NCBI GenBank assembly: GCA_019828565.1
Contig: JAHDYR010000002.1
Span: forward strand, 310,001 to 374,000
Direction: 5' to 3'
Length of the DNA stretch: 64,000 bases
Source of the DNA: Carpediemonas membranifera BICM
Taxonomy: Eukaryota > Protista > Fornicata
Position 1 is the first letter of the stretch; the number at the start of each line of letters is the position of its first letter. The notes below the pieces were generated by a model that made no database searches, had not been told where the DNA came from, and saw nothing but the letters and a program-made list of their open reading frames with translations. The translations under genes and the position numbers were made by a program. Of the stretch, positions 15,852 through 53,864 are shown piece after piece.

Positions 15852-15898
15852 ATGGATCTAAAGGAGAATTTCAGTGATTTTTGGTTTACTAAGTGAGT

Positions 15899-33526: not shown

Positions 33527-33844
33527 TAAGTGGAATAAAATGAACGAATGACTGATGCGGCACATTCTGTTTACGCTATACGACGATTTTAGAGAGCGCC
33601 AGAGAGGTGCTGCAGGGAGAGAGCTTGTGCTTGCGTATCCTGAGGGATGCGGGATGGGAGGGGCCGACGTAATTGGCCAATCCACGTTTGTGGATCACCT
33701 GGTGTCGTCCATACCGGGCGTCTCTCCGCCACAGGCTGTGTTGCTGCGCATGGAAAGCAGTGTTAACTGTGTTCTATTGCACGATAGCACGGGGTTATTG
33801 ACTGATGCGGCACCTACCTTAAATTGCTCGTCATCCACAGTTGT

Positions 33845-34854
33845 GGATGGACCGATATCGCGCTAAGCATCGCCAAGCACCTCTCAAAGGGCAATCATCC
33901 GCTCGACAAGATCATCACCTGTTCATTTCACCATGGAACGATGAGCAGCTCCGCATCCTTGGCGATAATGCGCGAGTTCTTCAGCTGCTCGCCATGATGG
34001 TCCCTTGGATGCGGAAGATCTTGGCCTCGCCTGCATTTAACCCCGGGTGCAAGCCCAATAGCACCGAGAAGGACCTCCTCGGCAAAGAGCTCGAACAGGA
34101 CGTGGATTCATCAAGAATCCTTCGTGAGATGTCCAATCGAGCGGCGTACAACAAAGCCCATGCCAAGATCATTCGTGATCTCGTTGAGTACCGGAACCGC
34201 GCAGCTCACAATGAGCTTGAGCCCGACACCCTGCCCAAGGTCCTGGAGCTGGTCGAGAGCTTGGCCCAGGCCTTCTCGGTTCCATTGCACGATAACGTCA
34301 GGGCGTTCATCGCGCTGCTTAAGTCGCCAGTGTCGCTCGTTGCGACAAGTGAACATCATGCTCTGACGAAGAAGGTCAGCATTCTTGAGGATGAGATTGA
34401 GAGGCTGCGTAGCGGCGGCCGTAAGACCATGCTCAGGCTGCCAGGTGTCAGGTCTCAGCCGGAGCCCACCACTTTGGAGCAGGCAACGATGACGACTTCG
34501 GACGTCGGAGACCTGGATGAGCCGAGGCCCAGGCCCGAAGACACGGGCAAGACGCGCGGTACGCTCATGTCCCGCACACTGACTGCTAGCCAGGTGGACC
34601 AGCTAGCTATGGCCAGAACGCATGACCCCCCGCTTGTCCTGTCAGGACGTTGCATCGTGTGCGGGGGCTCATGCGAGACCTCAGAGTGGGCTTGCCGTCG
34701 TACCTCAACGACGACACCCAAAGATCCTTGCCGAACGTTGATTCGGAAGGTTAGGACTGGGAATACTCGCGACGTCTCTGTCTACCTCACAGATGAGGCA
34801 TTTGAGTGGGTCAAACGTCGCGATCAGACAGGCAAGAGAGCGAGACAGGAATAA
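33845..34854 (+). CDS. Protein with HEPN (Swt1-like) RxxxxH motif and C-terminal Cys cluster
   Basis: Helical region with DSSRILR...LVEYRNRAAHNE; C-terminal RCIVCG. Confidence 0.6.
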
Positions 34855-34876
34855 ATGAATGTATATGTGCATGTCT

Positions 34877-35298
34877 GGGCCTCAGCGCTGTCGTTCAGGC
34901 CAATCCACGTTTGTGGATCCGTGCAGTTTATGGCTTATCGACCGGACATCTCCTGAACTGAGCGCCAGGGGGGCGGAGGTGGCGTTGGCGTGGGGCGTGG
35001 AGGCGCTGGGGGCGGGGGTGGCGTTGATATTGGGCAATTACATAAAGTGCACGGTGCTTGGAATTTCATTCCAACCTCAAAATGGCGGGAAAGCATTATT
35101 GGAAGGAACTAGTGGCAGCTATGCGGTTCTTTATACTGCAAAAGCAACCAGCTGTCGTCAAAAAGCGCGCCATCTACCATCAATAACCAACATCTGCGTT
35201 GCACTCCACTGTTCTCGGTCGTTAATGCACAAAATCACTAAACAACATCAGAAAGGAACAAAAGATAGATACTATAGACGTCCGTTTACCTATTCAGC
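34877..35298 (+). repeat. Module R copy 1; other copies ~36694-37267, 38570-39144, 40447-40908 and inverted ~47487-47960, 49523-50042
   Basis: Near-identical ~0.4-0.55 kb noncoding block with an ATCCAC/GTGGAT hairpin, a G-tract, and TAAAGTGC followed by a TTGGAAT/ATTCCAA hairpin. Confidence 0.9.
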
Positions 35299-35943
35299 CA
35301 GGCGCAGGTACTGACGCGCCGTCTCTCGGGCAGAAGATATACCATGGAGGGATGCGTTCTGGGCAAGGCGCTTGAACGACACAACGAACAGCGGAAGTCG
35401 CTCCCACTCTCCTTGGGCCCAGTAGTGATGGTCGTACTCGAGTGATAAATATTCGTAGGGGTGAATTGTTCGAACGCACACGAAGAAGAGAAGCGGGAGC
35501 AGTTTCGTCTCATCAGCAGCAACACGAACAAGAACGTGACCAATGTGGCACTGCACATTGGTCACGACCGGGTTGTCGTTGATGCGATGGACACCGATTG
35601 TTTCAGGGTTGGCGCTGACGCAAAACTGGGTTCCATCGATGAGGTAGTCGTAGTTACCATTTGACTGGCGCTCATGGATGACCTCACCGGCATAGACACC
35701 GACCAGAGAACCGACGTCGATTCGGTGCGACGAGATGACCCCTTGGCCAACATCGGTGCCCATGAGGGACTTCTGTGGCTCAAGAAGGATCCCATCTGCG
35801 GTCTTAGCGATGCCGTTCTCAAGTAGTTCTTCGCCTGCATGCTCAGAGTCCGCCTTCTTGCCACCTGCACCGAGGAACTGCTCTCTATCCTCCTTAGAGA
35901 GCTTTTTCAGAGACATCAATTTCTCGTAATCATCTAAAGACAT
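35290..35943 (-). CDS. SET-domain lysine methyltransferase-like protein
   Basis: DVGQGVIS..IDVGSLVGVYAGE, GVHRINDN and YEYLSLEY; homologous to the SET gene of element A. Start placed at MSLDDY. Confidence 0.75.
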   Translation of the reverse strand: MSLDDYEKLMSLKKLSKEDREQFLGAGGKKADSEHAGEELLENGIAKTADGILLEPQKSLMGTDVGQGVISSHRIDVGSLVGVYAGEVIHERQSNGNYDYLIDGTQFCVSANPETIGVHRINDNPVVTNVQCHIGHVLVRVAADETKLLPLLFFVCVRTIHPYEYLSLEYDHHYWAQGEWERLPLFVVSFKRLAQNASLHGISSARETARQYLRLAE

Positions 35944-36071
35944 TGTAATGTTCTCTCTTCCTCTGATCCATCTGTAGCAACATGCGGGATCATGATAGTG
36001 TGCATTCCTGTTGTCACTCACAATTGCGAAACTCGCTCTCTGTTCCATAACCTGCACATCGGATTTGAACG

Positions 36072-36674
36072 ATGACGACAGACAGCCAACAGTGGATCGC
36101 ATTTGAGCATCTTGCGGCTCTATACACCACTATAAAGCGTGGTAAGATAGAGACCGCAAGTCAATGCATCAACATGATCGAGGATTCCTGTGTGGAACGA
36201 TTTGTGATGTTCTGGCTAACTACAGAGAACGCGGCGACGATTTACAACGAGAAAACGGCTGCTCTGCAGGAGAGCTATGGAGACGGAGTTGTGCGGTGCT
36301 CGGGTACGGACAGCATCACGAGAACAATATCATCTTCCTCTCGTGGTGTCGAGCATGTATCGAGCATTGAGCGAGCATCAAGCGTCATGCAGCGTCACTT
36401 GGAGTTCCTGCATTGGGGCAAGATCGCCCTTTCCTGTAGCGGCAGGACGCTAGCTGACTTTGCGACTCAGCACTTCCCCTTCCGTGTCTCTGATATTGAA
36501 CGCAAGATTGTCTTCGTGATGGTCACCGTTCCCAATGAGTTCATGGTTTGGTATAAGGCGCTTGTTGACGAGAAGATCGATGAAGAAGAGTTTACCTACT
36601 ACATCATTTATCGTCTTAACTCCAGCGCGAAGGATCACATGGTTGTTAATGCCCTAACCTTCAAATATGAATGA
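36072..36674 (+). CDS. Hypothetical protein
   Basis: 200-aa ATG-initiated ORF, divergent from the SET gene. Confidence 0.55.
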   Translation: MTTDSQQWIAFEHLAALYTTIKRGKIETASQCINMIEDSCVERFVMFWLTTENAATIYNEKTAALQESYGDGVVRCSGTDSITRTISSSSRGVEHVSSIERASSVMQRHLEFLHWGKIALSCSGRTLADFATQHFPFRVSDIERKIVFVMVTVPNEFMVWYKALVDEKIDEEEFTYYIIYRLNSSAKDHMVVNALTFKYE

Positions 36675-37639
36675 TCAGAGAGAGTGATGTGGTTAAATGG
36701 ATTGCAAATGAGTCTTTTTAATGTCTCACCACCTGTTTGGGCCTCAGCGCTGTCGTTCAGGCCAATCCACGTTTGTGGATCCGTGCAGTTTATGGCTTAT
36801 CGACCGGACATCTCCTGAACTGAGCGCCAGGGGGCGGAGGTGGCGTTGGCGTGGGGCGTGGAGGCGCTGGGGGCGGGGGTGGCGTTGATATTGGGCAATT
36901 ACATAAAGTGCACGGTGCTTGGAATTTCATTCCAACCTCAAAATGGCGGGAAAGCATTATTGGAAGGAACTAGTGGCAGCTATGCGGTTCTTTATACTGC
37001 AAAAGCAACCAGCTGTCGTCAAAAGCGCGCCATCTACCATCAATAACCAACATCTGCGTTGCACTCCACTGTTCTCGGTCGTTAATGCACAAAATCACTA
37101 AACAACATCAGAAAGGAACAAAAGATAGATACTATAGACGTCCGTTTACCTATTCAGCCACTAAACAACATCAAAAGGACTGTTCATACGTTATTAAACA
37201 TTGCTTGCTACTTCTGTTTCATCTTATTGTCGTTTACAGCTGTGTTGTCCTCAACAAATGCCAAGACAGATCAACGAGGCGTTCGCGGCTTCCCGTTGAA
37301 GACTTGCCATTGCCAGAGAGAGTGCCATGCCTGGCACGTCTCTCTTCTTGTCTGCCGCGTGAAGGAATCGACCAGGCTGGATTCATGTGCAGCTTATGCA
37401 GCAATGGACACTCTGGAGTCAGAACTGCATTTGCAGCAGCTTATTGCTGCTATTGAGCTTACTTGTGGCCCTGTCCCATCAGAAAGAAACAACAGACAGG
37501 CCCGAAAGATCGCCGCGGTCATTTCTGGTGAGTTTGACAGAGCATTCGACCGTTTCTTGCGCGATCTCTTCGCCGACAGCCCGTCTATCATGAAGAGCTA
37601 GATCTCCTGGCGGAGATTCCCCAAGAGCCCATTGAAGAT

Positions 37640-38572
37640 GTGCCTGTCGCGGTAGGAGAAACCGCCAAGCCTGCATCCAAGCTTCAGCCCAAGACCACCA
37701 AGTCTGCGAAGAAGAAGGTGCAGACAAAGAAGCTGAGACAGCTGGCGCCGCGACGCGCTGGTACGCCTGCCCCGACACAACAGCAGGTCATCGTACCACT
37801 CAAGAACCTCAGCCGCCAGGAAGAGACAAGCCTTGAAACGTGGATTCGCAGCGTGCCGAAAAACTCTGCCATTACCATCGATATCTCTGGGATGGATGGT
37901 TTCAACGCCAGTGAGTCGACCCTTCACGAGCTGGAACACTCATTCCAGGAGAACAACGTCCGAGTTATTCGGGCCTGGATTGCTTACCAGCTTTGTCTCT
38001 ACGACTGTTTGTCAAGCCAGAAGATTAAGTATAACGAAAACGTGGCCCCCAGCGACGCCCTGCTCTCAGTGGCTCTTCAGCAGCAGAGGATCTTTGTCCA
38101 GGCGAACAAGCAAGGTGCACTTTCCACACGCCTTAACATAACGAAGACCCCCTTCTACAACAACGTTGTGGAGCGTCTGAAACTGATGGGTGAGACAGAA
38201 AGCATGATGTCAAAGTTCCACAACATCATTGGTGTCATCATCATCCACTTCGCCGACTTCACTTCCTTGCTGAAGAACCGAATGATCCCGAAGGATAACG
38301 ATACAGTCAGGGGCTTGAGCACCCTCATTGTTCACAGTCATCTGTGCATGGTTCACTCAACGGCGAAAGATATCCGTCCTGAGATCTACAATGCTCTGAC
38401 GACAAGCAGTACATTCCCGCCAGACCTTATGGCGTTTGCAAGAATGGCATTTGGTCTCGGACAAACCGCGGCGGTGACCCATGAGTCGCCCGAAAAGCAG
38501 AAGCATGCGGACAACACAATAGAGGATGATTCAGAGATCGAGACAAGTGGTAAGAGGGTGAGGACTGAGTAA
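37640..38572 (+). CDS. Hypothetical protein, copy 1 (true start uncertain)
   Basis: 310-aa ORF with a basic N-terminal region. Confidence 0.6.
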   Translation: MPVAVGETAKPASKLQPKTTKSAKKKVQTKKLRQLAPRRAGTPAPTQQQVIVPLKNLSRQEETSLETWIRSVPKNSAITIDISGMDGFNASESTLHELEHSFQENNVRVIRAWIAYQLCLYDCLSSQKIKYNENVAPSDALLSVALQQQRIFVQANKQGALSTRLNITKTPFYNNVVERLKLMGETESMMSKFHNIIGVIIIHFADFTSLLKNRMIPKDNDTVRGLSTLIVHSHLCMVHSTAKDIRPEIYNALTTSSTFPPDLMAFARMAFGLGQTAAVTHESPEKQKHADNTIEDDSEIETSGKRVRTE

Positions 38573-39516
38573 ATGGATTGCAAATGAGTCTTTTTAATGT
38601 CTCACCACCTGTTTGGGCCTCAGCGCTGTCGTTCAGGCCAATCCACGTTTGTGGATCCGTGCAGTTTATGGCTTATCGACCGGACATCTCCTGAACTGAG
38701 CGCCAGGGGGGCGGAGGTGGCGTTGGCGTGGGGCGTGGAGGCGCTGGGGGCGGGGGTGGCGTTGATATTGGGCAATTACATAAAGTGCACGGTGCTTGGA
38801 ATTTCATTCCAACCTCAAAATGGCGGGAAAGCATTATTGGAAGGAACTAGTGGCAGCTATGCGGTTCTTTATACTGCAAAAGCAACCAGCTGTCGTCAAA
38901 AGCGCGCCATCTACCATCAATAACCAACATCTGCGTTGCACTCCACTGTTCTCGGTCGTTAATGCACAAAATCACTAAACAACATCAGAAAGGAACAAAA
39001 GATAGATACTATAGACGTCCGTTTACCTATTCAGCCACTAAACAACATCAAAAGGACTGTTCATACGTTATTAAACATTGCTTGCTACTTCTGTTTCATC
39101 TTATTGTCGTTTACAGCTGTGTTGTCCTCAACAAATGCCAAGACAGATCAACGAGGCGTTCGCGGCTTCCCGTTGAAGACTTGCCATTGCCAGAGAGAGT
39201 GCCATGCCTGGCACGTCTCTCTTCTTGTCTGCCGCGTGAAGGAATCGACCAGGCTGGATTCATGTGCAGCTTATGCAGCAATGGACACTCTGGAGTCAGA
39301 ACTGCATTTGCAGCAGCTTATTGCTGCTATTGAGCTTACTTGTGGCCCTGTCCCATCAGAAAGAAACAACAGACAGGCCCGAAAGATCGCCGCGGTCATT
39401 TCTGGTGAGTTTGACAGAGCATTCGACCGTTTCTTGCGCGATCTCTTCGCCGACAGCCCGTCTATCATGAAGAGCTAGATCTCCTGGCGGAGATTCCCCA
39501 AGAGCCCATTGAAGAT

Positions 39517-40449
39517 GTGCCTGTCGCGGTAGGAGAAACCGCCAAGCCTGCATCCAAGCTTCAGCCCAAGACCACCAAGTCTGCGAAGAAGAAGGTGCAG
39601 ACAAAGAAGCTGAGACAGCTGGCGCCGCGACGCGCTGGTACGCCTGCCCCGACACAACAGCAGGTCATCGTACCACTCAAGAACCTCAGCCGCCAGGAAG
39701 AGACAAGCCTTGAAACGTGGATTCGCAGCGTGCCGAAAAACTCTGCCATTACCATCGATATCTCTGGGATGGATGGTTTCAACGCCAGTGAGTCGACCCT
39801 TCACGAGCTGGAACACTCATTCCAGGAGAACAACGTCCGAGTTATTCGGGCCTGGATTGCTTACCAGCTTTGTCTCTACGACTGTTTGTCAAGCCAGAAG
39901 ATTAAGTATAACGAAAACGTGGCCCCCAGCGACGCCCTGCTCTCAGTGGCTCTTCAGCAGCAGAGGATCTTTGTCCAGGCGAACAAGCAAGGTGCACTTT
40001 CCACACGCCTTAACATAACGAAGACCCCCTTCTACAACAACGTTGTGGAGCGTCTGAAACTGATGGGTGAGACAGAAAGCATGATGTCAAAGTTCCACAA
40101 CATCATTGGTGTCATCATCATCCACTTCGCCGACTTCACTTCCTTGCTGAAGAACCGAATGATCCCGAAGGATAACGATACAGTCAGGGGCTTGAGCACC
40201 CTCATTGTTCACAGTCATCTGTGCATGGTTCACTCAACGGCGAAAGATATCCGTCCTGAGATCTACAATGCTCTGACGACAAGCAGTACATTCCCGCCAG
40301 ACCTTATGGCGTTTGCAAGAATGGCATTTGGTCTCGGACAAACCGCGGCGGTGACCCATGAGTCGCCCGAAAAGCAGAAGCATGCGGACAACACAATAGA
40401 GGATGATTCAGAGATCGAGACAAGTGGTAAGAGGGTGAGGACTGAGTAA
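39517..40449 (+). CDS. Hypothetical protein, copy 2
   Basis: Identical to copy 1. Confidence 0.6.
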   Translation: MPVAVGETAKPASKLQPKTTKSAKKKVQTKKLRQLAPRRAGTPAPTQQQVIVPLKNLSRQEETSLETWIRSVPKNSAITIDISGMDGFNASESTLHELEHSFQENNVRVIRAWIAYQLCLYDCLSSQKIKYNENVAPSDALLSVALQQQRIFVQANKQGALSTRLNITKTPFYNNVVERLKLMGETESMMSKFHNIIGVIIIHFADFTSLLKNRMIPKDNDTVRGLSTLIVHSHLCMVHSTAKDIRPEIYNALTTSSTFPPDLMAFARMAFGLGQTAAVTHESPEKQKHADNTIEDDSEIETSGKRVRTE

Positions 40450-41022
40450 ATGGATTGCAAATGAGTCTTTTTAATGTCTCACCACCTGTTTGGGCCTCAG
40501 CGCTGTCGTTCAGGCCAATCCACGTTTGTGGATCCGTGCAGTTTATGGCTTATCGACCGGACATCTCCTGAACTGAGCGCCAGGGGGCGGAGGTGGCGTT
40601 GGCGTGGGGCGTGGAGGCGCTGGGGGCGGGGGTGGCGTTGATATTGGGCAATTACATAAAGTGCACGGTGCTTGGAATTTCATTCCAACCTCAAAATGGC
40701 GGGAAAGCATTATTGGAAGGAACTAGTGGCAGCTATGCGGTTCTTTATACTGCAAAAGCAACCAGCTGTCGTCAAAAGCGCGCCATCTACCATCAATAAC
40801 CAACATCTGCGTTGCACTCCACTGTTCTCGGTCGTTAATGCACAAAATCACTAAACAACATCAAAAGGACTGTTCATACGTTATTAAACATTGCTTGCTA
40901 CTTCTGTTACATCTCCTTAGGACATTTACTTCTGATTCTGTTTCTGCTCTCTCTTCTCCAGCACCTCTGCCATCTCGAGACCTGTCAGCAGCATTGATCT
41001 CATTCCTGCATCACAGAAAGTA

Positions 41023-42327
41023 TCAATCTCTTTTCGTCCGCTCAATCATTGCAATAAACTGCCTGTGCAGTCTTCCGCGCACACCTTTTGCGCACTTATT
41101 GGTGCTCACCTGCCTGTATCCCTTGTGGCATGTGTCACAGCTGACGTTCTCGCGTCCATGAAGGTCTCTACCACACACTATGCAGCGCCGATAGAAGACT
41201 TGACCCTCAAACCCTCGCTGACAGCAGTCGGTCAGTCTCTTTCGCTGAGCTGCAGACAGGGTGACCTCTTCTGTATCATCTAACAGAAGCGGACTCGGCT
41301 TGGCGACGCATTCATGCACGCGCATGATGACCTTGAGCTTGTCAAGACATTCGGCAGCAGTGGGACGCTTCGCAGGGTCGAAGTGGAGCATCTGCATTGC
41401 CAGGTCGTACAGGCTGAGACAAGTAGGTGGCGTGGTGCCGCGAATCGGGAGCTCAGAGTTCACGTTGACACACTCGAGGCAATCTTTGAAATGTGTCTGT
41501 GCCTGAGGTGACAACTGCAACTGCCCACCATAGAATTGGCACCAGTTCAGCAAGCTACCAAGCTTCAGCATCTTTTTCTTCTTCTTGTTGTCGATCTGCG
41601 CCATGTTTGCACCCATGTCAGTCACCTTCGCGGCAAAGGGGGACTTAGAGAGACCGTTAACGAGCATCATAATGACAATACCGCAAGAGTAAATGTCCGA
41701 TGCAGGTGTCACGACATAAGAAGTGACGGAAAGAGCCCCTGCCGTCATGCGCGCGAGCTTGGAGGTGTCGCGTGCAGCAGTAATCACTGAGCGCGAGACA
41801 AGGTACTCGTAGAACAGCTCTGGGGGCAAATATCCATGGGTGCCGCGATACTCGGATGCGAATCTCAGTTGTATGGCCCACCTGTCGTCGCCATTAGCCG
41901 GCTTCCTCATTGCAGACCCAAAATCAATGAGGTATCCCTTCTGACTCTTGCTGAAGAGGAAGTTGTCTGGCTTAATATCGCAATGGACAACCCCGTGGTC
42001 ATGCATGTAGCATACTGCCTGCAGCAGATGCGAAACATAGCGGAACTGCACGCTGGAGTGAGCCTTGCAGATGCCAGCGAAGGGGGTACAGTTGACCAAA
42101 GGAGCCATGAAGGCTGGATCACGGTCGACAAAACCTGTATCGACGACAGGGAGGACATGCGGACTGTCCTTGAGCGCTAGCAGGGTGGGAACCTCCATAC
42201 CATAATGCTCATCAACTTTGATCACGACCTGCAGCTTTTCAGGTTCAAAGTCGTGCAGATATTGTCTACTATTACCAGGTAAGGAAGTAAGTCGCTCCAG
42301 CTTGTCGCTATCTAGCTCGAACACCAT
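41023..42327 (-). CDS. Ser/Thr protein kinase with C-terminal Cys cluster
   Basis: VVIK, HCDIKPDNFL, DFG, GTHGYLPPE, DIYSCG and RPTAAECL. Confidence 0.9.
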   Translation of the reverse strand: MVFELDSDKLERLTSLPGNSRQYLHDFEPEKLQVVIKVDEHYGMEVPTLLALKDSPHVLPVVDTGFVDRDPAFMAPLVNCTPFAGICKAHSSVQFRYVSHLLQAVCYMHDHGVVHCDIKPDNFLFSKSQKGYLIDFGSAMRKPANGDDRWAIQLRFASEYRGTHGYLPPELFYEYLVSRSVITAARDTSKLARMTAGALSVTSYVVTPASDIYSCGIVIMMLVNGLSKSPFAAKVTDMGANMAQIDNKKKKKMLKLGSLLNWCQFYGGQLQLSPQAQTHFKDCLECVNVNSELPIRGTTPPTCLSLYDLAMQMLHFDPAKRPTAAECLDKLKVIMRVHECVAKPSPLLLDDTEEVTLSAAQRKRLTDCCQRGFEGQVFYRRCIVCGRDLHGRENVSCDTCHKGYRQVSTNKCAKGVRGRLHRQFIAMIERTKRD

Positions 42328-42491: not shown

Positions 42492-43689
42492 TCAGATGAA
42501 GGAAAAGACGATACTGTCGGCAGTATCGCTCTCTGAGCGCTCCTCATCAATCACATTCTCTTGAATCTCCCCATCACCATCTCTGCCCGCCACCTCCCCG
42601 CCATGCTCGTCGTGGTCGATCTTTGGTTCCTCATCGGCACTCTTGCATAAGTCCACCTCCTCACCAAAGGCGCCCTCCTCGCTCTCCTCGCGAGCTGGCA
42701 CCTCGTAGTGCATCCACTCTGCCTGGTAAGCTGGCTCGTCGGACACCGCCTCCTCGTCAGTATCGCCCTCTCTCTCGCCCTCTGGCATCTCTGTCTCGCG
42801 AGTCAGCGAGCCGAACTCCGCCTCCTTGTCAGCCTCGCTCTGCCTCTCTTTCTTCTTAGTATCGTGAAGCTCGATCATTCTGGCCTTGAGCCTGTTGTAA
42901 AGCCAGCCATCGAGCATCGGCGGCACCAGGTCGGCAGAGCTTGTGATCTCCGGGTTGAGATCAAAGATCGTCGGGCGCCGCGTGGTCGTTAAGTGACTGG
43001 ACGCCAACTGGTGCCTGAACTGCTCATCGGTCAGGCTGATGCGCTTGTCCTTAATGACCTTCTGAGGCTTCTCCTGCGGTCTGCCGCGGCGCTCTAGCGT
43101 GCCGATAGACTGCATCCTATCGGTGGACACGTCGATCCGCTGCGCAAAGCGAAGCATGCGAACCGTCAACCCCTGAACCTTGAGCGCCTCCGATACAGCA
43201 CTGGCCTGCGGGAATCCCGATTTGAGCGTGCCAAAGCCCATCCAGCTCGGGCACGAGGTAAGGTCTATCGCATCGGGGAGATTACCTTGGAGATACGAAT
43301 ACTCCCAGCCCGTCTGGTTGAGCAGAATGGCAATGGCGCCATACGGGCTGGGGAGACTCTCAACTGATGCAGGGGACACCTCTTCCTCCTCTTTCCAGGA
43401 CAACGGCTTCGCAGGGTGTGGCAAGTCGAAGTTCCGGAAAGACTGAACAGCCGAAACGATCCTCTTAGCCATAGCAGGCGTCTTTGTAGCGAAATAATGC
43501 GCCAAATAAGTCGTAACGTTGTCGCTTCGGACAATCTCGATGCCCTTCTGCATTTCAGCGCCTGTTTCCTGGCAAATGCTGGCCAAAAACGTCCTCCAGG
43601 TGCTTCTTGTACACACTACGCGTCTTCACTGAAACTCTATCAGACCAGCGCTTAACAATATCGTCGTTATTTGCAGCTAGAACCTCCAT
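42492..43689 (-). CDS. Degenerate tyrosine-recombinase-fold protein with acidic tail (+1 T frameshift near 43587)
   Basis: SVKTRSVYKKHL...VTTYL...IVSAVQSF (core-binding-like), AILLNQTGWEYSYL (box I-like without Arg), EQFRHQLAS (box II-like). Confidence 0.4.
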
Positions 43690-43899: not shown

Positions 43900-44921
43900 C
43901 AAGTTATATTTCTGAAAACCGAATACACGGTGATACTGTTATCTATTAGCTCCAGTAGGGACCCAGGCCAGGTTTTGTACACCCTACCCGCTTGCCTCGG
44001 AATTCGGACATGCCGAAATTCTGAAATTCGAATACCACCGCCCATTTTTTGACGTATGAGATCAGTATCCCATGCCAAACCTCAGGACCGCATTCGTGTA
44101 CCTTTTCCTGCCCTGTATCCATTATATAACCACCCAATTTCCTTTCACAATGTGCACTTTATGCTCGCAACGAGACTGAAATGGCGAACTTAAGAATAGA
44201 AAGAATACTGGCAGCTTTAACGTAGTAGGCATGCACATATCACTAAGAAACATCAGTAAGCGAGCGCAGAGCATCATTAAAGCAACAATAATCCCTAAAC
44301 AACATCAAGTACCATAAGTCCACCACGTCCATACGATATGAACTATAAATGGAGCATAGATCAGTACAGATGATTTGAAAGTACCAGGCATGGCCAGAAT
44401 ACCGCAATTATCGTCCGTTGATCCACGTGACCTCCATCTTGGTCGGTATCCAGAGAACCTCCGTCAGACGCTTGCAACGGAACATTTAGGGGAGCATCCT
44501 GAATGGGGCCAGATTTGAGGGACCCTTGGTCTGACATGCCATGACCGAGTACTCTAGGGGCCTCCACAGTGCGTCCCGAGGTACGTTATAGCACCACAGA
44601 CCTTCCCCCAAAAGCTGACTCCTGGACCCCTTGGCCGGAGCTCGCCAAAACGTGAAAATCGGCGATGATTTCTCCGTATAACGTCATAGGGGGTTATATG
44701 GGGCTCTTTTCAGCCGCAGATAACGTCTCTTGGCCATATTAAATTTGCGAAAGGCCCCGGCTCGCTGGCCGGACGATTTAATCAGCATCGGCGAGAATGG
44801 ACGTGTGGGTAGGGCTAGGGGTGTGATGACGGCTGGTGGTAGTCACGGTGTGAGTGCTTACAAGCCGCAGGCGATATACATAAACTTTTAGTAACCATTT
44901 AACGTCTCTTGGCGATATACG

Positions 44922-46641
44922 ATGCTAGACTTGTTCACTTGGCTGGAAGAAGCCACTGAGTTCGAGAAGAAGGAGCTAATGACCAAGATCAATGCAGCTG
45001 CAAGCGCTAAAGGCAAATGCGACGTCCTTCGCGCGCTTTTGCTGCCTAGGCGCGATTTACTCGCTACTGTGATCAAGGAACGTACGTTACTGAGCGAAAT
45101 TGTTTACACAGGTGTTAATCTCAAGCGTATTGCCACGTTCTTCCGCCTCACGCGCCAGGAGACAGAAGATATGAAGAAGGACCTTAAGGCGCAGTTTATG
45201 GCGACGATGAAATTGAATGAGGGTGAAAGGGTCACAGGGGAACACAAGAAAACACTGAAGCAGGTCCTCGGCGGGGATACCTTCACGCACCTGTACGACG
45301 GCGAGGTGGAGAGCGCGCGTATTCGGGTGAAGAAGAGCATTCGTGAGGCTAGAATGAAGACAAACGCTAGGCTTGAGTGTGAACTCGCGAAGGAGGAGGA
45401 CGAGGACATCAGGGATTGTACTCGGGTTCAGATGATGAAGCTGGCCGATGAGGAAGACCGAAAGGAGTTGGAAAAGGAGATGGAATACACGCGCGAGTCC
45501 AAGTATGACGTGGTATGGGAGCGAGTGTACGATGAGATCTGCGGTACTCGTCGTGTGCGGGCCCGCAGGGATAACGCCCCCTGTCCCGGCGAGGATCACG
45601 CCGACCACGTGCTTCAGCGCTATCTCTGGGCCGACCAGATCGATACTCAGGCGCTTACTGGCGAGAAGACGTTGACCACGAGACTCCCTGCTGAAGCTCG
45701 AGTCGTACGTCGCGTGACAGCCAGTCTGATCTCTGCTCAGAAGACGGAGATCCAATCTCTCAAGGAGCAGGTCGAGCGGCTGAAGAAGCAGGTGACTGAC
45801 GAGAGAAGAGACCACTTTCTTGAGTGCAGGCGTATCCATCATGAGCATGACGTTGGGTACCTTGCTTCCTGCGATGTTTCGTTCGCCGCCAGCCCCATGC
45901 CGCCACAGTCTGGCACGCTCTCCAGGACTTCCTGCCCCCGACGCGCTACGAACGAGCCCGAGGCCTCCATGTCTGTGAAGCGCAAGGCCCTCTTCATCAC
46001 GCCCGAGAAGGCCAGGCCTGAGGACTCAGAGGAGGAGACAGAGGAGGAGCAGGAGGAGGCGAAGGAGAAGAGGGGTGAGGCAGAAGAGGAGACGGTGAAC
46101 ACATGCGACGCCTGCATCCAGACTGAGCCGGAGACTCAGACTCGCATCACCTCTGAGGCCGCGGTGCAGACGTGCATCAACGTGGAGGCTCTCACGACTA
46201 ACTGTACCGCGATTCATGTCAAGAGTGACGGCAACTGCGTTGCATATTGTCTCCAAGCCATTGAGTTGGGTGGCCGAGTTGATGGCGACTTCGAAAAAGT
46301 GGCAGCGTGGCCTCTGCCAGTCAGTGAAGGCCAAGTACTGGTCTAAGAAGAATGTCACGGAGCGTAGCCTGACAGATCCGGACTCCGGCTACTATAACTC
46401 GAACGCCATCCGAGTCTGGGCAAGGAAGCAGAAGCGGAACATCCTTGTTGTCCAGTCATACGACGGATACAACGGCATGCAAGGCATCTCCGCCATCTTA
46501 TACCTGTTTGATGGCACCACCATGCTTGCACCCGATACAGACTTGTGGGGGTTGACAGATAATTTCGCTATTGTCATCGAAGGCGATCCGGCTCACGCCA
46601 CGCTGTACCAGAAGAAGTGCGAGGTCGTTGAGATTGAATAA
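44922..46641 (+). CDS. Coiled-coil + OTU-like protein (+1 A frameshift near 46296)
   Basis: First ~400 aa nearly identical to 18880-20757. OTU domain VKSDGNCVAYCL...AHATLY. Confidence 0.75.
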
Positions 46642-46684
46642 AGATTTGGATATGCCTTTGTAGTGCGTTCGACTGTGTACGTTT

Positions 46685-47402
46685 AGGAGAAGGCTGAGAC
46701 GGAGAAGAAGGAGGACAAGGAGGTGGAGACAGAGGAGAAGAAGGGTAAGTAGGCAGACGAGGAGGAGCCTGACACGGTGGTGCGTGGGCCGGAAGATGAC
46801 GACAATATGTCAGTCGTGTCGATCAGTGACAACGAGCATGAGCCTGAGCTGGTCTTCGACGTACAAACCGCGATCGACAGGATCCTGACCTGCCCTGCCA
46901 AGGAGATTCACCGTGACGGAGCCTGCATCGCTCATTCGCTCAACGACATTAAGCACGGCCAAGTACTGGGTAAGAATCGAATCAAACATTTCAAAAAAAT
47001 CATCTGAGAGAACACACCGAGGAATCCATGGCCAAAAAGGCCGAGGGCCAGGTCAGGGGCACATGGTGGGACCCTTCCGAGCTGTTCAACGGCCAGGGCT
47101 GGCTGACAAGCACTGCTATCTCGGCTTGGACGCATCTTGAGAAGGAGAAGGTCATGGTCCTGCAGCGCAGAGAAGAGGAAGATGGTCGCATAGTCAACTC
47201 AGCGACTGTTTACGACAACGGAAGGGTCTACCCTCAGGATTTCAGAAGTCTGACTCAACTCAGTGATGCCATCAGGGAGACGGGCCACGAGAAGGTCATT
47301 GTCATTACGGGTAATCATGCCACGGTGTATCTCGTGGCGGAGCTTCTGTCAGATGGCACTGGTGAAGAGAGTGTGCCGAAGACAAGGAAGGGGAGGAAGT
47401 AA
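46685..47402 (+). pseudogene. Orphan OTU-like C-terminal domain with an acidic linker remnant
   Basis: IHRDGACIAHSL ... ISAWTHL ... NHATVY. In-frame stop in the linker and an indel in the A-run near 46995. Confidence 0.6.
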
Positions 47403-47587
47403 ATGGTTTGATGTGTTCGGTTGTCTTTCATCTGTGAAATGAGAACAGGCGTGAGTGTCATGGACACAGATGGCCCGGACAGCGTTGCCTCCGTCTTGGC
47501 ATTTGTTGAGGACAACACAGCTGTAAACGACAATAAGATGAAACAGAAGTAGCAAGCAATGTTTAATAACGTATGAACAGTCCTTTT

Positions 47588-49522
47588 GATGTTGTTTAGT
47601 GATTTTTGTGCATTAACGACCGAGAACAGTGGAGTGCAACGCAGATGTTGGTTATTGATGGTAGATGGCGCGCTTTTGACGACAGCTGGTTGCTTTTGCA
47701 GTATAAAGAACCGCATAGCTGCCACTAGTTCCTTCCAATAATGCTTTCCCGCCATTTTGAGGTTGGAATGAAATTCCAAGCACCGTGCACTTTATGTAAT
47801 TGCCCAATATCAACGCCACCCCCGCCCCCAGCGCCTCCACGCCCCACGCCAACGCCACCTCCGCCCCCTGGCGCTCAGTTCAGGAGATGTCCGGTCGATA
47901 AGCCATAAACTGCACGGATCCACAAACGTGGATTGGCCTGAACGACAGCGCTGAGGCCCAGACATGCACATATACATTCATTTATTCCTGTCTCGCTCTC
48001 TTGCCTGTCTGATCGCGACGTTTGACCCACTCAAATGCCTCATCTGTGAGGGTAGACAGAGACGTCGCGAGTATTCCCAGTCCTAACCTTCCGAATCAAC
48101 GTTCGGCAAGGATCTTTGGGTGTCGTCGTTGAGGTACGACGGCAAGCCCACTCTGAGGTCTCGCATGAGCCCCCGCACACGATGCAACGTCCTGACAGGA
48201 CAAGCGGGGGGTCATGCGTTCTGGCCATAGCTAGCTGGTCCACCTGGCTAGCAGTCAGTGTGCGGGACATGAGCGTACCGCGCGTCTTGCCCGTGTCTTC
48301 GGGCCTGGGCCTCGGCTCATCCAGGTCTCCGACGTCCGAAGTCGTCATCGTTGCCTGCTCCAAAGTGGTGGGCTCCGGCTGAGACCTGACACCTGGCAGC
48401 CTGAGCATGGTCTTACGGCCGCCGCTACGCAGCCTCTCAATCTCATCCTCAAGAATGCTGACCTTCTTCGTCAGAGCATGATGTTCACTTGTCGCAACGA
48501 GCGACACTGGCGACTTAAGCAGCGCGATGAACGCCCTGACGTTATCGTGCAATGGAACCGAGAAGGCCTGGGCCAAGCTCTCGACCAGCTCCAGGACCTT
48601 GGGCAGGGTGTCGGGCTCAAGCTCATTGTGAGCTGCGCGGTTCCGGTACTCAACGAGATCACGAATGATCTTGGCATGGGCTTTGTTGTACGCCGCTCGA
48701 TTGGACATCTCACGAAGGATTCTTGATGAATCCACGTCCTGTTCGAGCTCTTTGCCGAGGAGGTCCTTCTCGGTGCTATTGGGCTTGCACCCGGGGTTAA
48801 ATGCAGGCGAGGCCAAGATCTTCCGCATCCAAGGGACCATCATGGCGAGCAGCTGAAGAACTCGCGCATTATCGCCAAGGATGCGGAGCTGCTCATCGTT
48901 CCATGGTGAAATGAACAGGTGATGATCTTGTCGAGCGGATGATTGCCCTTTGAGAGGTGCTTGGCGATGCTTAGCGCGATATCGGTCCATCCACAACTGT
49001 GGATGACGAGCAATTTAAGGTAGGTGCCGCATCAGTCAATAACCCCGTGCTATCGTGCAATAGAACACAGTTAACACTGCTTTCCATGCGCAGCAACACA
49101 GCCTGTGGCGGAGAGACGCCCGGTATGGACGACACCAGGTGATCCACAAACGTGGATTGGCCAATTACGTCGGCCCCTCCCATCCCGCATCCCTCAGGAT
49201 ACGCAAGCACAAGCTCTCTCCCTGCAGCACCTCTCTGGCGCTCTCTAAAATCGTCGTATAGCGTAAACAGAATGTGCCGCATCAGTCATTCGTTCATTTT
49301 ATTCCACTTATCACTCTTGGTCATCCTCCTCATCACTCACCTCCTCGCGGATACTGACATCATCACGAGCCTCGTCATCCGCGAGTGTCAATGGCTCTGT
49401 AATAGCGCGGGCAGCGTTGGTATACTCACCGTTGAACTGTCGCTGGCCTCTCTGAATGCGAGGAAAGCAATTCACGCACACCGGAACACGACGAGAAGGA
49501 CGCTTCAACATGTCAGTTCCAG
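47588..49522 (-). repeat. Inverted duplication of 33315-35250 (PHD gene 3' fragment, HEPN gene, module R)
   Basis: Identical translations on the opposite strand; the HEPN copy has a +1 G near 48050. Confidence 0.92.
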
Positions 49523-50275
49523 CCTCCGTCTTGGCATTTGTTGAGGACAACACAGCTGTAAACGACAATAAGATGAAACAGAAGTAGCAAGCAATGTTTA
49601 ATAACGTATGAACAGTCCTTTTTGATGTTGTTTAGTGATTTTTGTGCATTAACGACCGAGAACAGTGGAGTGCAACGCAGATGTTGGTTATTGATGGTAG
49701 ATGGCGCGCTTTTGACGACAGCTGGTTGCTTTTGCAGTATAAAGAACCGCATAGCTGCCACTAGTTCCTTCCAATAATGCTTTCCCGCCATTTTGAGGTT
49801 GGAATGAAATTCCAAGCACCGTGCACTTTATGTAATTGCCCAATATCAACGCCACCCCCGCCCCCCAGCGCCTCCACGCCCCACGCCAACGCCACCTCCG
49901 CCCCCCTGGCGCTCAGTTCAGGAGATGTCCGGTCGATAAGCCATAAACTGCACGGATCCACAAACGTGGATTGGCCTGAACGACAGCGCTGAGGCCCAAA
50001 CAGGTGGTGAGACATTAAAAAGACTCATTTGCAATCCATTTACTCAGTCCTCACCCTCTTACCACTTGTCTCGATCTCTGAATCATCCTCTATTGTGTTG
50101 TCCGCATGCTTCTGCTTTTCGGGCGACTCTACATGAGTCACCCTTGCAGTGGACGTGGTTGTGGAGCACCCCCAGTGTCTCCACGTCCGCCACCAGCGCC
50201 AGATCCGCCACCATGCCCTACATCAGCACATTTGTGTATTTACTTTTGTAAATTTGTCCTATTGCTATTGAAGCA

Positions 50276-52843
50276 ATGCGTTTCGAGAACTGGGAAGTCG
50301 TCATCACCTATGGGGCGGACAGTTCTCTTGGATCTATCATCACCGCTGTCTTAGACGAGTTTCTGCTCCGAAACCGCGACAAATCGTTTCGTTTAGACAG
50401 CAAGGAGCAGTGCTTGCGCATTCTCCGAGATTTCCTGACGTCATGTCCACTGAGGGTGACACATAGTGATGCTACGTTACGTAGTGCAGTCGTTAATGCT
50501 GATTGGAGCGCATTGATGAGGAATCACAGCACTGCTCATGTGACTGTTACGCGAGTCGACAACGAGGCGAAGACGAAGAGCCTATACACGGCCATGGCAA
50601 TTATCTGTGCCGTCGAGTTAGGGAAGAATCGCTACGACCGACTCCGCCATGCATTTGTTTCAATGGCCTCCGACATGGGAGTTCGCCTTGGAATTCACAC
50701 TCCACCGGTGGTAGACAGTCTCCAGAATCTTGGGTATGACCTGCTGTCCATCCCAGCCATACGATCTGTTATATCAGACCCAACACTGATCGAGGACGTC
50801 AACGCGTTCACTCCTGAGCAGCCCGATGTCTCTGGGCGTGATGGGGTGTCTAACCAAGAGCTTCAATGTCAAGCAGGAGCCGGTTTCACGCGTAGCGTGG
50901 AAGTCGCGGAGGCTTTTTACGTCCTATATGACCCAACCACCCACACCGACCTGCAAGAGACTCTCGATGAACACGACTGCCTCTTCGCTCACCACTTCGA
51001 GAAGATATCGGGGGAGTCACGGCTATACATTTCGCATGATGATCCATCCAAGCTGCCGGAGATTCAGAGATTATGCCGGAACATGGGCATCATTCCGCGT
51101 GGAACAAAGAAATCTCACCGGATGGTGATCAGCGCTCTGTCCTATGACCCTGTCGCCCAGATTAAGTTCATGCTGAAGTTCCCCGACCGAGTTCAGCGCG
51201 ATATCAAGTCAAGCAAGTTCGTTCAATCCGTCACTATTAACCCGGAGAGCCGACAGGAGGCTTATGGTCTTGAGATGCTCCTATGGTTTGATGGATATCG
51301 GGCCGACTGTACGGCGGTCAAATATCGCATAATTGATCGCGAGGGAGCAGCCCTACCACAGAAGATTACCCCACCCATGACGCTTCTTACATTTCAGGGC
51401 ACAGAGAAGCTCATTCCTTCGTTCTTTGATGATGTACAGCGGCTAATGAACAAGCTCATTGGTATCCCCTTCGCATGTGGTGACAGTTCGTTGCTCCCAC
51501 GCAGCCGTGTTGTCATCAGCCTGCTCGGGATCTGCGGCGATCACAAAGCGTTGCAGATTGTTAGTGGCGTCAAGCGGGGACGATACTACCGCTCTCCATT
51601 CTCCTCCCTACACATGGGAAAGGTCGCAAGCGACCCGTTTGCCAATCGTTGCGATCGCTGGACAATCGCAGATAGCATCCGTCTTCGTGACGCTGGTGGC
51701 GTGAAAGACATGACACGGTTTGGGTCCCGCGATGGTCACCGAGATGTCTGCTGTCTGACCTATGCCAACGAGATAGATGGCCCACTTCACGTGCTCACAA
51801 AGTACGCTGATGTCACGTTCATTCCACCTGTCATGCATGTGAGTCACTATCTTATGAAGGACTTCTGGACGCTGCTTGGCCTTGTCAAGGTTCAACACGC
51901 TGGTCAGAACGTGCACACACTTGAGCAGATTGAAAAGCTGTTCACGCGGACAACTGGCTGCAACGAGCAGAGCTGGAACAGACGAAAGCTCGCGACACTA
52001 GTCAACGAGCACCTTGAGGAGTTTGACCAGTCACTCCAGCCCTTCATACTCCTTACAGCCAAGTTACAGGCGTTGTATTACTCCTCTGACCACGTGACAC
52101 ACCAGACAATCGCTTTCCATCACGCGGCGTCCTTTTCTACGTTCATTATGTTCCATGTCTTGACGTTGTTCTATGACCTTCCATCGAGTCGCTCCTCGGT
52201 TGCTACGACGCTCAATGATGGTCTCAGACTGACTTACTCTCCCAAGTTTACCGGCTCGCTATATCTGAATGCAGTGGTGTCAGTTCTGCCCAAGGTTCAC
52301 TCGAAACTGCGGCTTCCGATGTTCTATTTGCTTGAGGAGTACTTCGAACGTGATTTCCTCATCATCAATGCCCAGTTGCGAGTGGACAAGCATCGATCTT
52401 GGGTTCTCGGCTTCCTGGCTCAGAAGACAATGGTCGGTCGTGTCCTTGCTCACTACACCCGCCGTGGCTCATCGAGAAAGCATGGTATGGTGTTGCCGAT
52501 TGCAAGGCAGTGTAAGTCTGTCACATTCTGCTCGTGTCTATTTGATGCCGACCGGTGTGCCGCCTGGAGAAATCGTCTATTAACTAAGGTACCCAACTGG
52601 GATAGGGAGGCGAGCCAACAGTCGCTGAATGCGCTGTTTAGTGGATGGGTCAAGGGTATCTGTGAGGAGCCGGAGGAGATCCGGGAACTCATCACTGTTG
52701 ACGAGACAGCCAAGACGATTTGTGTAAGGACGGCGGACAGTGGTCTGGATGAGACTCTCTGCATCTGCAATCTGTGCAACAGTGAGCAGCGAGCGGAGGA
52801 GCTGATGAGGAGGACTGGGCACAATCTTCGCCCGAGAAGATAG
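50276..52843 (+). CDS. Transposase of element C (855 aa, intact)
   Basis: Motifs WFDG, ICGDHKAL, PPVMH, RTTGCNEQ, LEEYFERDF and LCICNLC. Confidence 0.8.
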   Translation: MRFENWEVVITYGADSSLGSIITAVLDEFLLRNRDKSFRLDSKEQCLRILRDFLTSCPLRVTHSDATLRSAVVNADWSALMRNHSTAHVTVTRVDNEAKTKSLYTAMAIICAVELGKNRYDRLRHAFVSMASDMGVRLGIHTPPVVDSLQNLGYDLLSIPAIRSVISDPTLIEDVNAFTPEQPDVSGRDGVSNQELQCQAGAGFTRSVEVAEAFYVLYDPTTHTDLQETLDEHDCLFAHHFEKISGESRLYISHDDPSKLPEIQRLCRNMGIIPRGTKKSHRMVISALSYDPVAQIKFMLKFPDRVQRDIKSSKFVQSVTINPESRQEAYGLEMLLWFDGYRADCTAVKYRIIDREGAALPQKITPPMTLLTFQGTEKLIPSFFDDVQRLMNKLIGIPFACGDSSLLPRSRVVISLLGICGDHKALQIVSGVKRGRYYRSPFSSLHMGKVASDPFANRCDRWTIADSIRLRDAGGVKDMTRFGSRDGHRDVCCLTYANEIDGPLHVLTKYADVTFIPPVMHVSHYLMKDFWTLLGLVKVQHAGQNVHTLEQIEKLFTRTTGCNEQSWNRRKLATLVNEHLEEFDQSLQPFILLTAKLQALYYSSDHVTHQTIAFHHAASFSTFIMFHVLTLFYDLPSSRSSVATTLNDGLRLTYSPKFTGSLYLNAVVSVLPKVHSKLRLPMFYLLEEYFERDFLIINAQLRVDKHRSWVLGFLAQKTMVGRVLAHYTRRGSSRKHGMVLPIARQCKSVTFCSCLFDADRCAAWRNRLLTKVPNWDREASQQSLNALFSGWVKGICEEPEEIRELITVDETAKTICVRTADSGLDETLCICNLCNSEQRAEELMRRTGHNLRPRR

Positions 52844-53864
52844 ATAGATGGATAATCGGAGTATGTATATAAAGGGTTCTTTATGTTTACACTATCTTCA
52901 CCAATCTACAGTCAATTACGTCTATTGCGAGCGAAGAACAGCTTTCAGTAAGAAATTTGAGGCAACTGTCAGGTAATTCTTAGTAACGTCGTCGGCAATG
53001 GCGTAATAGTCATCCATTTCAGTCAAGTGACTCAGCTTAACGCGCATTTGCTTGATTTCGGCGATAAACTCGGCCCGCTTCATTCGTTTGTCATAAAGTG
53101 CATTCCGGCCATATCACAAGTTTTCTTCATCACAAGGCACGCACGGGGGTGTAAGCGGGACCGAGGCTACCACCACAGCCTCTTCTGAGCCGATGGATAC
53201 CTTTTGTTGATTTGCCAGAATTGACCAAACGACGAGGAATGCTTGATATGCCGCGTATGGATGATTTGAAGAAGAACTGAAGGTGAAAGACAAAGATCAT
53301 AGAAATATACATCATGCGGCTCACTTTTTGGAGACATTGGAGGTAAATTAGCTTTTAGGATCGTTTTTCGTTTGCCAGGCAAAGTTTTGAGTGTTTTCTC
53401 GAGAATACTCGATGCCGTATGCAATCTTGCTGCTATTTGATGCAGAACAAAGGTTGTTATGTGACACAGATGTTCTCACTTGCTTTCGGCCTTCTTTGTT
53501 GGCGAGCAAAAGCAAACTTCTTTGGGAGCAATTCCCAAAAATCGCATCTTTACGCACCCAGGAAATTTTATCTCGGCATACTGGACCAGTGGGGGAGGCA
53601 CGGCAGTCTATCCCGACCCTAGATGAACCATGAGACAGTTTTTCGACGAGAGTTTGTGCGATGCCACTGACTTCGCGAGTGAGGGTCTTCAGCATGTTGT
53701 ACGGATGTCTAAACGATGCCTTGTGCAAGTGCAAGGCGTAATACGCTGTAGTTTAATTGTTTGAGCGCGTTCATTTTTTCTTGCAATCGTCCTTTTTTCA
53801 TGTATTCCGGGACTTATTCCGGGACTTAAAGTCCCGGTTAAAGTACCAGAAAAAACAGCATGAA

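Follow-up and report, generated by a model that had tools for sequence, protein, structure and literature searches.

How a gene could come to carry a front half almost identical to that of a neighbouring gene and a C-terminal domain unrelated to it is the question raised by positions 44154 to 47402 of a 64,000-nucleotide stretch of Carpediemonas membranifera DNA (contig JAHDYR010000002.1, assembly GCA_019828565.1), which is referred to below as the window. C. membranifera is a free-living metamonad and is predicted to be haploid (genome paper). The window contains gene C at the positions given, gene B on the opposite strand and a third gene, the A gene, and they end in domains, here called tips, which a first-pass annotation of the sequence had taken for OTU domains. 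The explanation which best accounts for the locus, and to which we assign a probability of about 0.72, is that of a cassette-shuffled, transposon-linked gene family with divergent OTU tips. The locus would then be one copy of a family almost confined to Carpediemonas, and each gene would be made up of a conserved 5' block, an N cassette (N1, N2 or N3), an acidic linker and a C-terminal cassette of OTU fold. Tip types are designated T_A to T_G and T_S, transposase-like genes Tp, loci fetched for comparison by L numbers and proteins by P numbers; coordinates are collected in Table 1.

Exchange of N-terminal and C-terminal cassettes

The inverted, near-identical copy reported by the first-pass annotation was recovered as one blastn alignment of 44154-46134 with 21526-19554, showing 97.2% identity over 1982 nt, and the arms 19609-21190 / 44489-46070 and 21188-21526 / 44154-44492 are 98% and 95% identical, respectively. 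The repeat takes in 768 nt before the ATG (44922) and 404 codons, in keeping with the upstream region and roughly 400 codons that had been claimed. The two genes part company where the annotation had placed their divergence, after CDACIQTEPE: identity between B and C is 98% to 100% up to ~45950, 84% to 89% in the linker, and at random level from 46135. The tips, GDGDC...AHAEVY in gene B and SDGNC...AHATLY in gene C, are mutually unrelated in sequence, as had been stated, and both the fourth tip ascribed to the A gene and the scrap of the gene B tip were found (Table 1). Gene B is an intact open reading frame (ORF) of 625 amino acids at 18880-20757 on the minus strand. In gene C an extra A at 46294 disrupts the T_C frame (A5 versus A4 in five other copies, with AAAG in L005), and a frameshifted T_C was also found in P0015, at another locus and behind an N2 front. 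The T_S coding pieces were used separately, and where continuous sequences were needed, the database proteins P0002 and P0006 were used.

Ten C. membranifera loci were fetched with 10-kb flanks and the modules were placed in them by tblastn and hidden Markov model (HMM) searches; 15 further C. membranifera proteins and these ten further loci underlie the cassette counts. The tips fall into at least eight types (T_A to T_G and T_S), 19% to 33% identical to one another, and the N regions into three homologous types, 21% to 30% identical, and no intermediates between cassette types were found, while one and the same cassette is 97% to 100% identical in differing contexts. N1 was observed with T_B (window gene B), with T_C (window gene C, L002, L003, L005 and L006) and with T_D (L004); N2 with T_B (L007), T_C (L008 and P0015), T_D (L009) and T_E (P0009); N3 with T_C (P0013), T_E (L010) and T_G (P0014/P0024); and the A gene of the window combines T_A with an N-terminus of its own. 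All four combinations of N1 and N2 with T_B and T_C exist, and a recombination-free tree therefore cannot explain the data. N1 is 98% to 100% identical among all N1 loci, independent of the tip, and the T_B tip recurs behind N2 in L007 at 98% identity. The C-terminal exchange proposed by the first-pass annotation is thus confirmed in the surveyed loci, and its own refuting condition, that only the two combinations exist genome-wide and that breakpoints are not clustered in the linker, did not hold: at least ten combinations of N and tip were found, with breakpoints clustered in the 245-bp linker at a repeated motif. Its constant N-terminus did not hold, the N region being a second cassette slot with three cleanly swapped types.

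The breakpoints were located at 44154, ~44601, 45890, 46097 and 46134 and form three clusters, namely the 5' block (44154-44601), the border between N cassette and linker (45890) and a repeated linker motif (46097-46134). The left edge of the 5' block is sharp, at GCACTTTATGC, and at least three unrelated sequences abut the block at one identical base (44154), the block being 93% to 98% identical in W_B, L003, L004, L005 and L007-L010. Homology between N1 and N2 loci begins at 45890, at SPIPPQSGT, and N2 and N3 replace N1 between identical borders. At the other side of the linker, homology stops at 46097 in loci with T_D and at 46134 when T_B is compared with T_C, and the crossover points coincide with the repeated motif CCCGAGAAGGCCAGGCC[TA]GAGGACTC (EPEKARPEDS). 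Most copies have this motif singly and B has it twice; L007 has three, at the bounds of a 135-bp tandem duplication. In L010 one motif copy follows CDACIQAEPE and leads into the T_E pre-tip region, exactly as after the first motif in P0009. The distribution of linker variants follows the tip in part and the N type in part, a pattern which, as far as the sequence goes, fits repeated conversion tracts.

Replacement by patches is seen directly in L004 and L009, two loci from separate contigs that share 99.5% identity across more than 20 kb, apart from the patch between 5' block and linker, where one carries N1 and the other N2. Cassette exchange in this family is real.

The N1 protein part is helical and charged, and a Pfam scan of the N1 region gave no match; the cross-organism alignment of N-terminal regions was too weak for a fold assignment. 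The N2 and N3 cassettes contain introns of 28 to 29 nt (GTACGT/GTTTGT ... TTATATAG) just before a conserved YIGINLNH motif (L009:10165-10193, the equivalent positions in L007 and L008, and L010:~9885-9912). The N1 counterpart, at about 45083-45112 of the window, is a stretch of 30 nt in frame (GTACGT...ACAG) that is read as coding, a possible mini-intron that has become exonic or is spliced optionally.

A divergent OTU fold in the tips

The identification of the tips as OTU domains in the first-pass annotation was upheld by the modelled structure, Pfam giving no match. For the intact T_C tip (P0002:400-572), AlphaFold produced a model from an eight-row alignment, with a predicted local distance difference test (pLDDT) score of 73 and a predicted template modelling (pTM) score of 0.74. 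The Foldseek comparison of this model with the PDB showed only OTU deubiquitinases among the matches listed, the best being OTUD3 (E 3.9e-4), at template modelling (TM) scores of 0.45 to 0.58; also listed were nairovirus viral OTU domains (vOTUs), a Wolbachia OTU (TM up to 0.55), OTUD1, OTUD2, A20 and DUBA. Matches from the viral structure library include alloherpesvirus tegument proteins, nairovirus L proteins and, besides these, several proteins with OTU domain-containing in their names.

The Cys at the catalytic position lies within a DGxC motif, which is present in T_A, T_B, T_C, T_S, T_F and T_G, and forms the N-terminus of helix 40-49 in the T_C model, and the His of HA(T/E)(L/V)(Y/F) is invariant in all aligned tips, with His159 opening strand 159-165 of the model. 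All eight tip types fit one OTU-like profile. When an eight-tip profile was compared with PDB sequences, six sub-threshold matches were obtained, and three of them (E 0.4 to 0.6) are chains of about 170 to 196 residues named RNA-directed RNA polymerase L, which are probably viral OTU domains. UniRef names P0014 and P0024 OTU domain-containing. Because the listed PDB structure matches are all to OTU domains, the Cys stands at a helix start and the His at a strand start, a very divergent OTU fold is accepted for the tips on the strength of the model. The tips constitute a strongly divergent, new OTU clade, and from the modelled fold each would presumably be a deubiquitinase or a protease for ubiquitin-like proteins (UBL).

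A motif, PEMKxIIxQHSP, is common to the N-terminal part of the A gene (N_A) and to the T_D pre-tip region (P0005/P0010), and given this sharing the tip cassette may start further upstream in some types. Longer models of the A gene are P0022, P0021 and P0023.

Linkage to transposase genes and competing readings

Three transposase-like genes, TpA, TpB and TpC, are found in the window and are 28% to 34% identical among themselves. None of the three gave a relevant Pfam match (E <= 10) or a PDB match in a profile search, and the alignment of six Tp sequences contains invariant D228, D307 and E460 as well as a PPxMHxSH motif. In the Tp model (pLDDT 52), D228 and D307 coincide with or follow strands 218-230 and 296-306, and E460 stands at the start of helix 458-478; the best-predicted core (170-310) has an RNase H-like order of strands and helices with both Asp in canonical places. 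The Foldseek matches of the model were the RAG1 core, Transib, RAG-like and P element transposases (E 1.6e-5 to 6e-3, TM about 0.3). Tp is read as a putative DDE transposase of an unclassified superfamily, an assignment resting on the consistency of these matches and the positions of the motif residues, since the model itself is poor.

In 7 of the 11 loci the OTU gene has a Tp paralogue no more than 6 kb away, in variable orientation. The TpC arrangement of the window is repeated in L003, and in L002 TpC is closer and interrupted. The near-identical N1 block was found beside TpB, TpB-like, TpC and TpC-like genes, and these transposase-like genes are only 24% to 38% identical to each other; this speaks in favour of a recent exchange between diverged elements, as the first-pass annotation had proposed. 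The type of tip tends to track the Tp lineage (TpA with T_A, TpB with T_B, TpB-like with T_D, and TpC with T_C and T_S). Locus L007 is a derivative of the B element which lacks exactly 14745-18432, that is, 3.7 kb comprising the transposase and most of a Cys-rich ORF (window 13120-14744 and 18433-19683 align with L007:12020-13639 and 10742-12014).

The distribution of relatives is narrow. The word-based protein search with gene B returned 10 further proteins, all from C. membranifera, and that with TpC two proteins from C. membranifera only, while a full HMM search of 1.84 billion representatives gave 13 matches, nearly all from C. membranifera; four matches had another origin, assembly GCA_002919055.1 accounting for at least two. 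A match from Galleria was discarded as a false positive (chitin-binding). On two contigs of the other organism (L011, PPCM01000946.1, and L012, PPCM01001064.1, both of assembly GCA_002919055.1), a Tp homologue of 24% to 31% identity stands together with an OTU-like gene and a Cys-rich ORF, and L012 also carries a kinase gene. L013 (SRR4018424) was grouped with L011 and L012 as a relative outside C. membranifera. The elements represent a putative unclassified multi-gene DDE transposon family in metamonads.

In the favoured explanation the OTU genes would belong to, or travel with, multi-gene DNA transposons encoding a DDE-type transposase, a Cys-rich protein, ORF-U and often a kinase, and dispersed copies would swap N and tip cassettes patch by patch. 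Ectopic homologous recombination (crossing-over) or gene conversion, or else template switching during the repair of excision gaps, is the probable route, with the conserved 5' block and the linker, notably its repeated motif of about 30 nt (EPEKARPEDSEEE), as homology arms. It would be because the conserved blocks act as such arms that the window has a 97% to 99% identical N1 front on two unrelated tips beside 28%-identical transposases. The T_B scrap by the end of TpB and the L007 deletion derivative may represent the debris that such repair leaves. The product would be an accessory protein of the transposon that uses its OTU tip to strip a target of ubiquitin or a UBL, a function already proposed for the OTU and Ulp1 domains of Ginger1, Helitrons and Mutator-like elements (PMC2836005; PMC9741609), and it may have a role in transposition or in a conflict with the host ubiquitin system. 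The observations in favour of this explanation include a dN/dS (the ratio of non-synonymous to synonymous substitution rates) of roughly 0.2 to 0.3 for N1 and T_C when differences among copies are pooled, although on small counts.

Several observations weigh against this explanation. With respect to the tips, T_D and T_E keep the Cys and have no Asp of DGxC (YGNC and HGNC), Pfam OTU (PF02338) gave no match to the tip pieces of the window at E <= 10 or to full-length B, the A-type proteins and other relatives at E <= 0.1, the TM scores supporting the fold are only about 0.5, and the model alignment has eight rows. With respect to the transposon, the Tp model is poor at its pLDDT and its TM score to RAG1 is low, four C. 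membranifera loci among the 11 have no transposase within 10 kb, and neither element ends nor terminal inverted repeats (TIRs) nor target-site duplications (TSDs) could be defined from the copies compared; homology between copies of element C ends at 44154 and at about 53839-53862, and a search for inverted repeats between these limits found none. The survey is confined to annotated genes and 11 fetched loci, and the single-base frameshifts (46294, L007, TpA, TpB) may be errors, because the assembly was built from Nanopore R9.4 and Illumina data.

The alternative with the most in its favour concerns the third tip, T_S. The first-pass annotation had described a third OTU domain (RDGAC...NHATVY) directly downstream in C with only a linker remnant, and it was found at 46777-47402, behind an acidic, E/K-rich linker remnant that contains a TAG. 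The evidence on its interpretation as an orphan spare domain is divided: the linker remnant, which by eye resembles the KKGES-EED-T part of intact linkers, and the lack of a full-length gene ending in T_S among annotated proteins (a word search with T_S returned only itself) speak for it, whereas an intact short intron and the protein P0006, which splices T_S onto the preceding tip, do not. T_S was found in the window, L002, L003 and L006 only, following T_C in four of six fetched T_C loci, and its second coding piece is 99% to 100% identical in the four copies. The candidate intron differs between copies by A6/A7, which leaves the product unaffected. A frameshift at the A7 homopolymer was considered as the cause of the change of frame in T_S and dropped, since the phase-correct GTAAGA..AG intron explains the change.

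Instead of a spare, T_S could be the second OTU domain, or an alternative set of 3' exons, of one di-OTU gene read through very short introns, and we regard this as a real if tentative possibility, the less probable of the two. The database model P0006 splices T_C to T_S with three GT..AG introns of about 70, 30 and 40 nt, as deduced from the P0006 protein and the L006 sequence, T_S contains a phase-correct intron of its own, and introns of 28 to 29 nt do occur in N2 and N3 cassettes. In addition, the 1-nt indels among the four T_S copies fall only in candidate introns (46685 and 46993), the sole coding indel being of 6 nt, two OTU-like domains stand in the single ORF P0016 of another organism, and T_S has not turned up as the tip of a full-length gene. 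However, every copy of T_C ends in TAA, the models P0002 and P0003 stop at T_C though T_S follows alike at those loci, the first P0006 intron is in frame only in L006 (by an extra G), and the linker remnant contains a TAG (46750). The T_C loci L005 and L008 moreover keep the remnant downstream of T_C, with homology ending at 46777 and no T_S, and gene finders readily invent short GT..AG introns to bypass stop codons. The second OTU-like domain of P0016 has Ser at the position of the catalytic Cys. Another solitary tip, T_F (HRDGSC...DHAELV), occupies a 265-codon open frame at L002:6525-7319, upstream of the N1+T_C gene, with no linker or N cassette.

An extended form of the favoured explanation, in which a two-slot cassette transposon would keep silent spare tips downstream, use the linker motif of about 30 nt as its crossover site and reassort OTU domains against ubiquitin-based host control, is rather doubtful. 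If it were true, OTU reassortment would be an arms-race device, the transposon counterpart of tip switching in polymorphic toxins or of antigenic-variation cassettes.

It is unlikely that the OTU genes make up an ordinary multigene family of the host in repeat-rich DNA with transposases as mere neighbours. The loci lacking a transposase (4 of 11) would be expected under such a reading, as would the varying orientation and distance of transposase and OTU gene (convergent, tandem or divergent; 0.4 to 5.8 kb) and the failure to find element ends, and pooled dN/dS below 1 suggests maintained function, although with so few differences among copies it is a hint at most. The linkage of transposase, OTU gene and Cys-rich ORF nevertheless recurs on two contigs of a different organism with transposases only 24% to 31% identical, each transposase lineage tends to carry its own tip type, whole units are dispersed at 99% identity across contigs, and the transposase-deleted derivative L007 retains the OTU gene.

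Assembly chimeras among near-identical repeats are a very improbable source of the mosaics. The assembly is Nanopore-based and rich in repeats and contains homopolymer frameshifts, but the cassettes of 1 to 2 kb are well under read length, identical junctions recur base for base on contigs with different unique flanks, the cassettes differ by 70% to 80% at the protein level so that an assembler cannot confuse them, and the frameshifted T_C stands with N1 in the window but with N2 in P0015. Practically no credence can be given to fast evolution of N-termini and tips around a selected linker and 5' block with no exchange at all, which the alternation of conserved and divergent blocks, taken alone, would fit, since the upstream non-coding DNA is as similar as coding N1 (93% to 100%), the few N1 differences include synonymous sites, and the four combinations, the single differing patch between L004 and L009 and the missing intermediates described above all contradict it.

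Known systems and neighbouring features

OTU and Ulp1 protease domains are carried by Ginger1 transposases, Helitron/Helentron proteins and Mutator-like elements (MULEs), where they are thought to aid transposition or to protect element proteins (PMC2836005; PMC9741609), and transposon-borne OTU domains have not yet been assayed for catalysis (PMC9741609). The Carpediemonas family resembles Ginger1, Helitron and MULE in the association of a DNA transposon with a cysteine protease of the ubiquitin/UBL type, putative in the Carpediemonas case. Ginger1, Helitrons and MULEs have the protease as a domain fused to their transposase or RepHel protein and matched by Pfam PF02338, whereas in Carpediemonas it is encoded separately, has an N-terminal domain of its own and lies below Pfam detection, its partner transposase is of another, unclassified type, and at least eight exchangeable versions of the protease exist. 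RAG1, Transib and the P element are the best structural matches of the Tp model, and Tp has an invariant D, D, E in which a long stretch is inserted after the second D; Tp differs from them in having no Pfam or PDB sequence match, a low-confidence model and no TIRs or TSDs found.

Tip replacement and orphan tips are familiar from bacterial polymorphic toxins such as Rhs and CDI/CdiA. The analogy with these toxins drawn by the first-pass annotation stands as far as architecture goes, with a conserved front, a short demarcation motif at the junction and unrelated-looking C-terminal tips exchanged by recombination, and a displaced tip downstream with a fragment of the conserved region is a possible further likeness. 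It does not extend beyond this, the Carpediemonas tips being all of one fold, the front itself a swappable cassette and the context that of a eukaryote and a transposon. The N1, N2 and N3 protein starts appear by eye charged, helical and not hydrophobic, with no obvious secretion signal, and no ORF resembling an immunity gene stood out behind the tips in the lists of ORFs and genes, which were not searched systematically for one. Crinkler (CRN) effectors of oomycetes likewise pair varied C-termini with a conserved N-terminus and have a recombination motif (HVLVxxP); they form a eukaryotic modular family in which recombination at the conserved junction motif reassorts N- and C-modules. CRN effectors, in contrast, are secreted and host-targeting, have C-termini of many folds and are not transposon genes. 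The likeness to polymorphic toxins and Crinklers is architectural only.

Proteases of the ubiquitin system recur in transposons and viruses, and the present family offers a natural experiment with eight divergent OTU tips, three front modules and at least ten combinations in one small genome of a cultured organism, with the junctions mapped to the base. Differences between tips in ubiquitin or UBL specificity, and the choice of cassettes by each transposase lineage, thereby become testable, and the family illustrates cleanly, in a eukaryote, how dispersed repeats exchange cassettes patch by patch.

Table 1. Positions of cassettes, transposase-like genes and associated features in the window
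Feature	Positions	Strand	Basis
T_A gene: own N-terminus and OTU-like tip (PDGLC...EHATLF)	1486-2448	-	ORF, HMM
TpA: transposase-like gene, two ORFs	6186-8763	-	paralogue of TpB and TpC
Cys-rich 390-amino-acid ORF travelling with transposase	14679-15851	-	homologues adjoin Tp in L004, L009, L011, L012
TpB: transposase-like gene, convergent with gene B, C-terminal part in second frame	16188-18471	+	paralogue of TpA and TpC
53-nt scrap of T_B tip, copy of 19012-19062	18482-18534	-	90.6% identity, E 3e-13
T_B tip and pre-tip region (GDGDC...AHAEVY)	18880-19553	-	ORF; homologous loci
Inverted copy of 5' block, N1 and linker (front of gene B)	19554-21526	-	sequence comparison
Protein kinase gene, part of repeated unit	41023-42327	-	Pfam Pkinase, E 2e-23
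ORF-U: upstream neighbour of OTU gene, divergent orientation	42492-43616	-	homologues in other loci
Conserved 5' block (promoter or 5' untranslated region)	44154-44601	+	common to N1, N2 and N3 loci
N1 cassette: about 320 nt of 5' flank and N-terminal coding part (ATG 44922)	44602-45889	+	locus comparison
Acidic linker (SPIPPQSGT ... PEKARPEDSEEE ... CDACIQTEPE)	45890-46134	+	recombination zone; common to N2 loci from 45890
T_C tip (SDGNC...AHATLY), stop 46639-46641	46135-46641	+	three-frame read; P0002:400-572 is an intact copy
Linker remnant (EKAETEKKEDKEVETEEKKGK, TAG 46750-46752, then ADEEEPDT)	46687-46776	+	three-frame read, by-eye comparison
T_S first coding piece (RDGAC Cys motif)	46777-46969	+	tip HMM profile match
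Candidate 41-nt intron in T_S (GTAAGA...GAGAG)	46970-47010	+	phase-compatible; restores a continuous OTU domain, as in P0006
T_S second coding piece (...NHATVY), stop 47400-47402	47011-47402	+	four-copy comparison
TpC: transposase-like gene, 2.85 kb downstream of T_S	50252-52843	+	paralogue of TpA and TpB

In L004, L005 and L007-L010 the OTU gene has a homologue of ORF-U (44% to 93% identity) upstream of it. The kinase gene is 99% identical in L008, 83% in L010 and 68% in L002, and a kinase gene adjoins the OTU gene in L012 too.

The window is eukaryotic and rich in repeats, with Ty3/gypsy-type pol genes, a SAC9-like gene, a kinase gene and tandem arrays of 40-bp and 1.9-kb units, and Rfam and tRNA scans of the window gave no matches. 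The array of 40-bp period (21527-23400) adjoins the 5' block of gene B and contains long Pro/Ala/Ser-rich ORFs in several frames, and the junction at 21494-21793 is duplicated at 100% identity at 22669-22968. The second array has a period of about 1876 bp, and between T_S and TpC an inverted copy of a related unit was found (34800-41000, 47487-50142 and 33315-34786 for array and related copies together), with 480-bp direct repeats flanking a 318-amino-acid ORF which has weak HEPN-like Pfam matches; L002 has the collapsed, single-repeat form of this unit at the same site. Two Ty3/gypsy-like pol remnants (protease, reverse transcriptase, RNase H) lie in opposite orientations at 26190-28958 and 29256-31861, and a PHD-finger ORF is found near them at 32339-33526.

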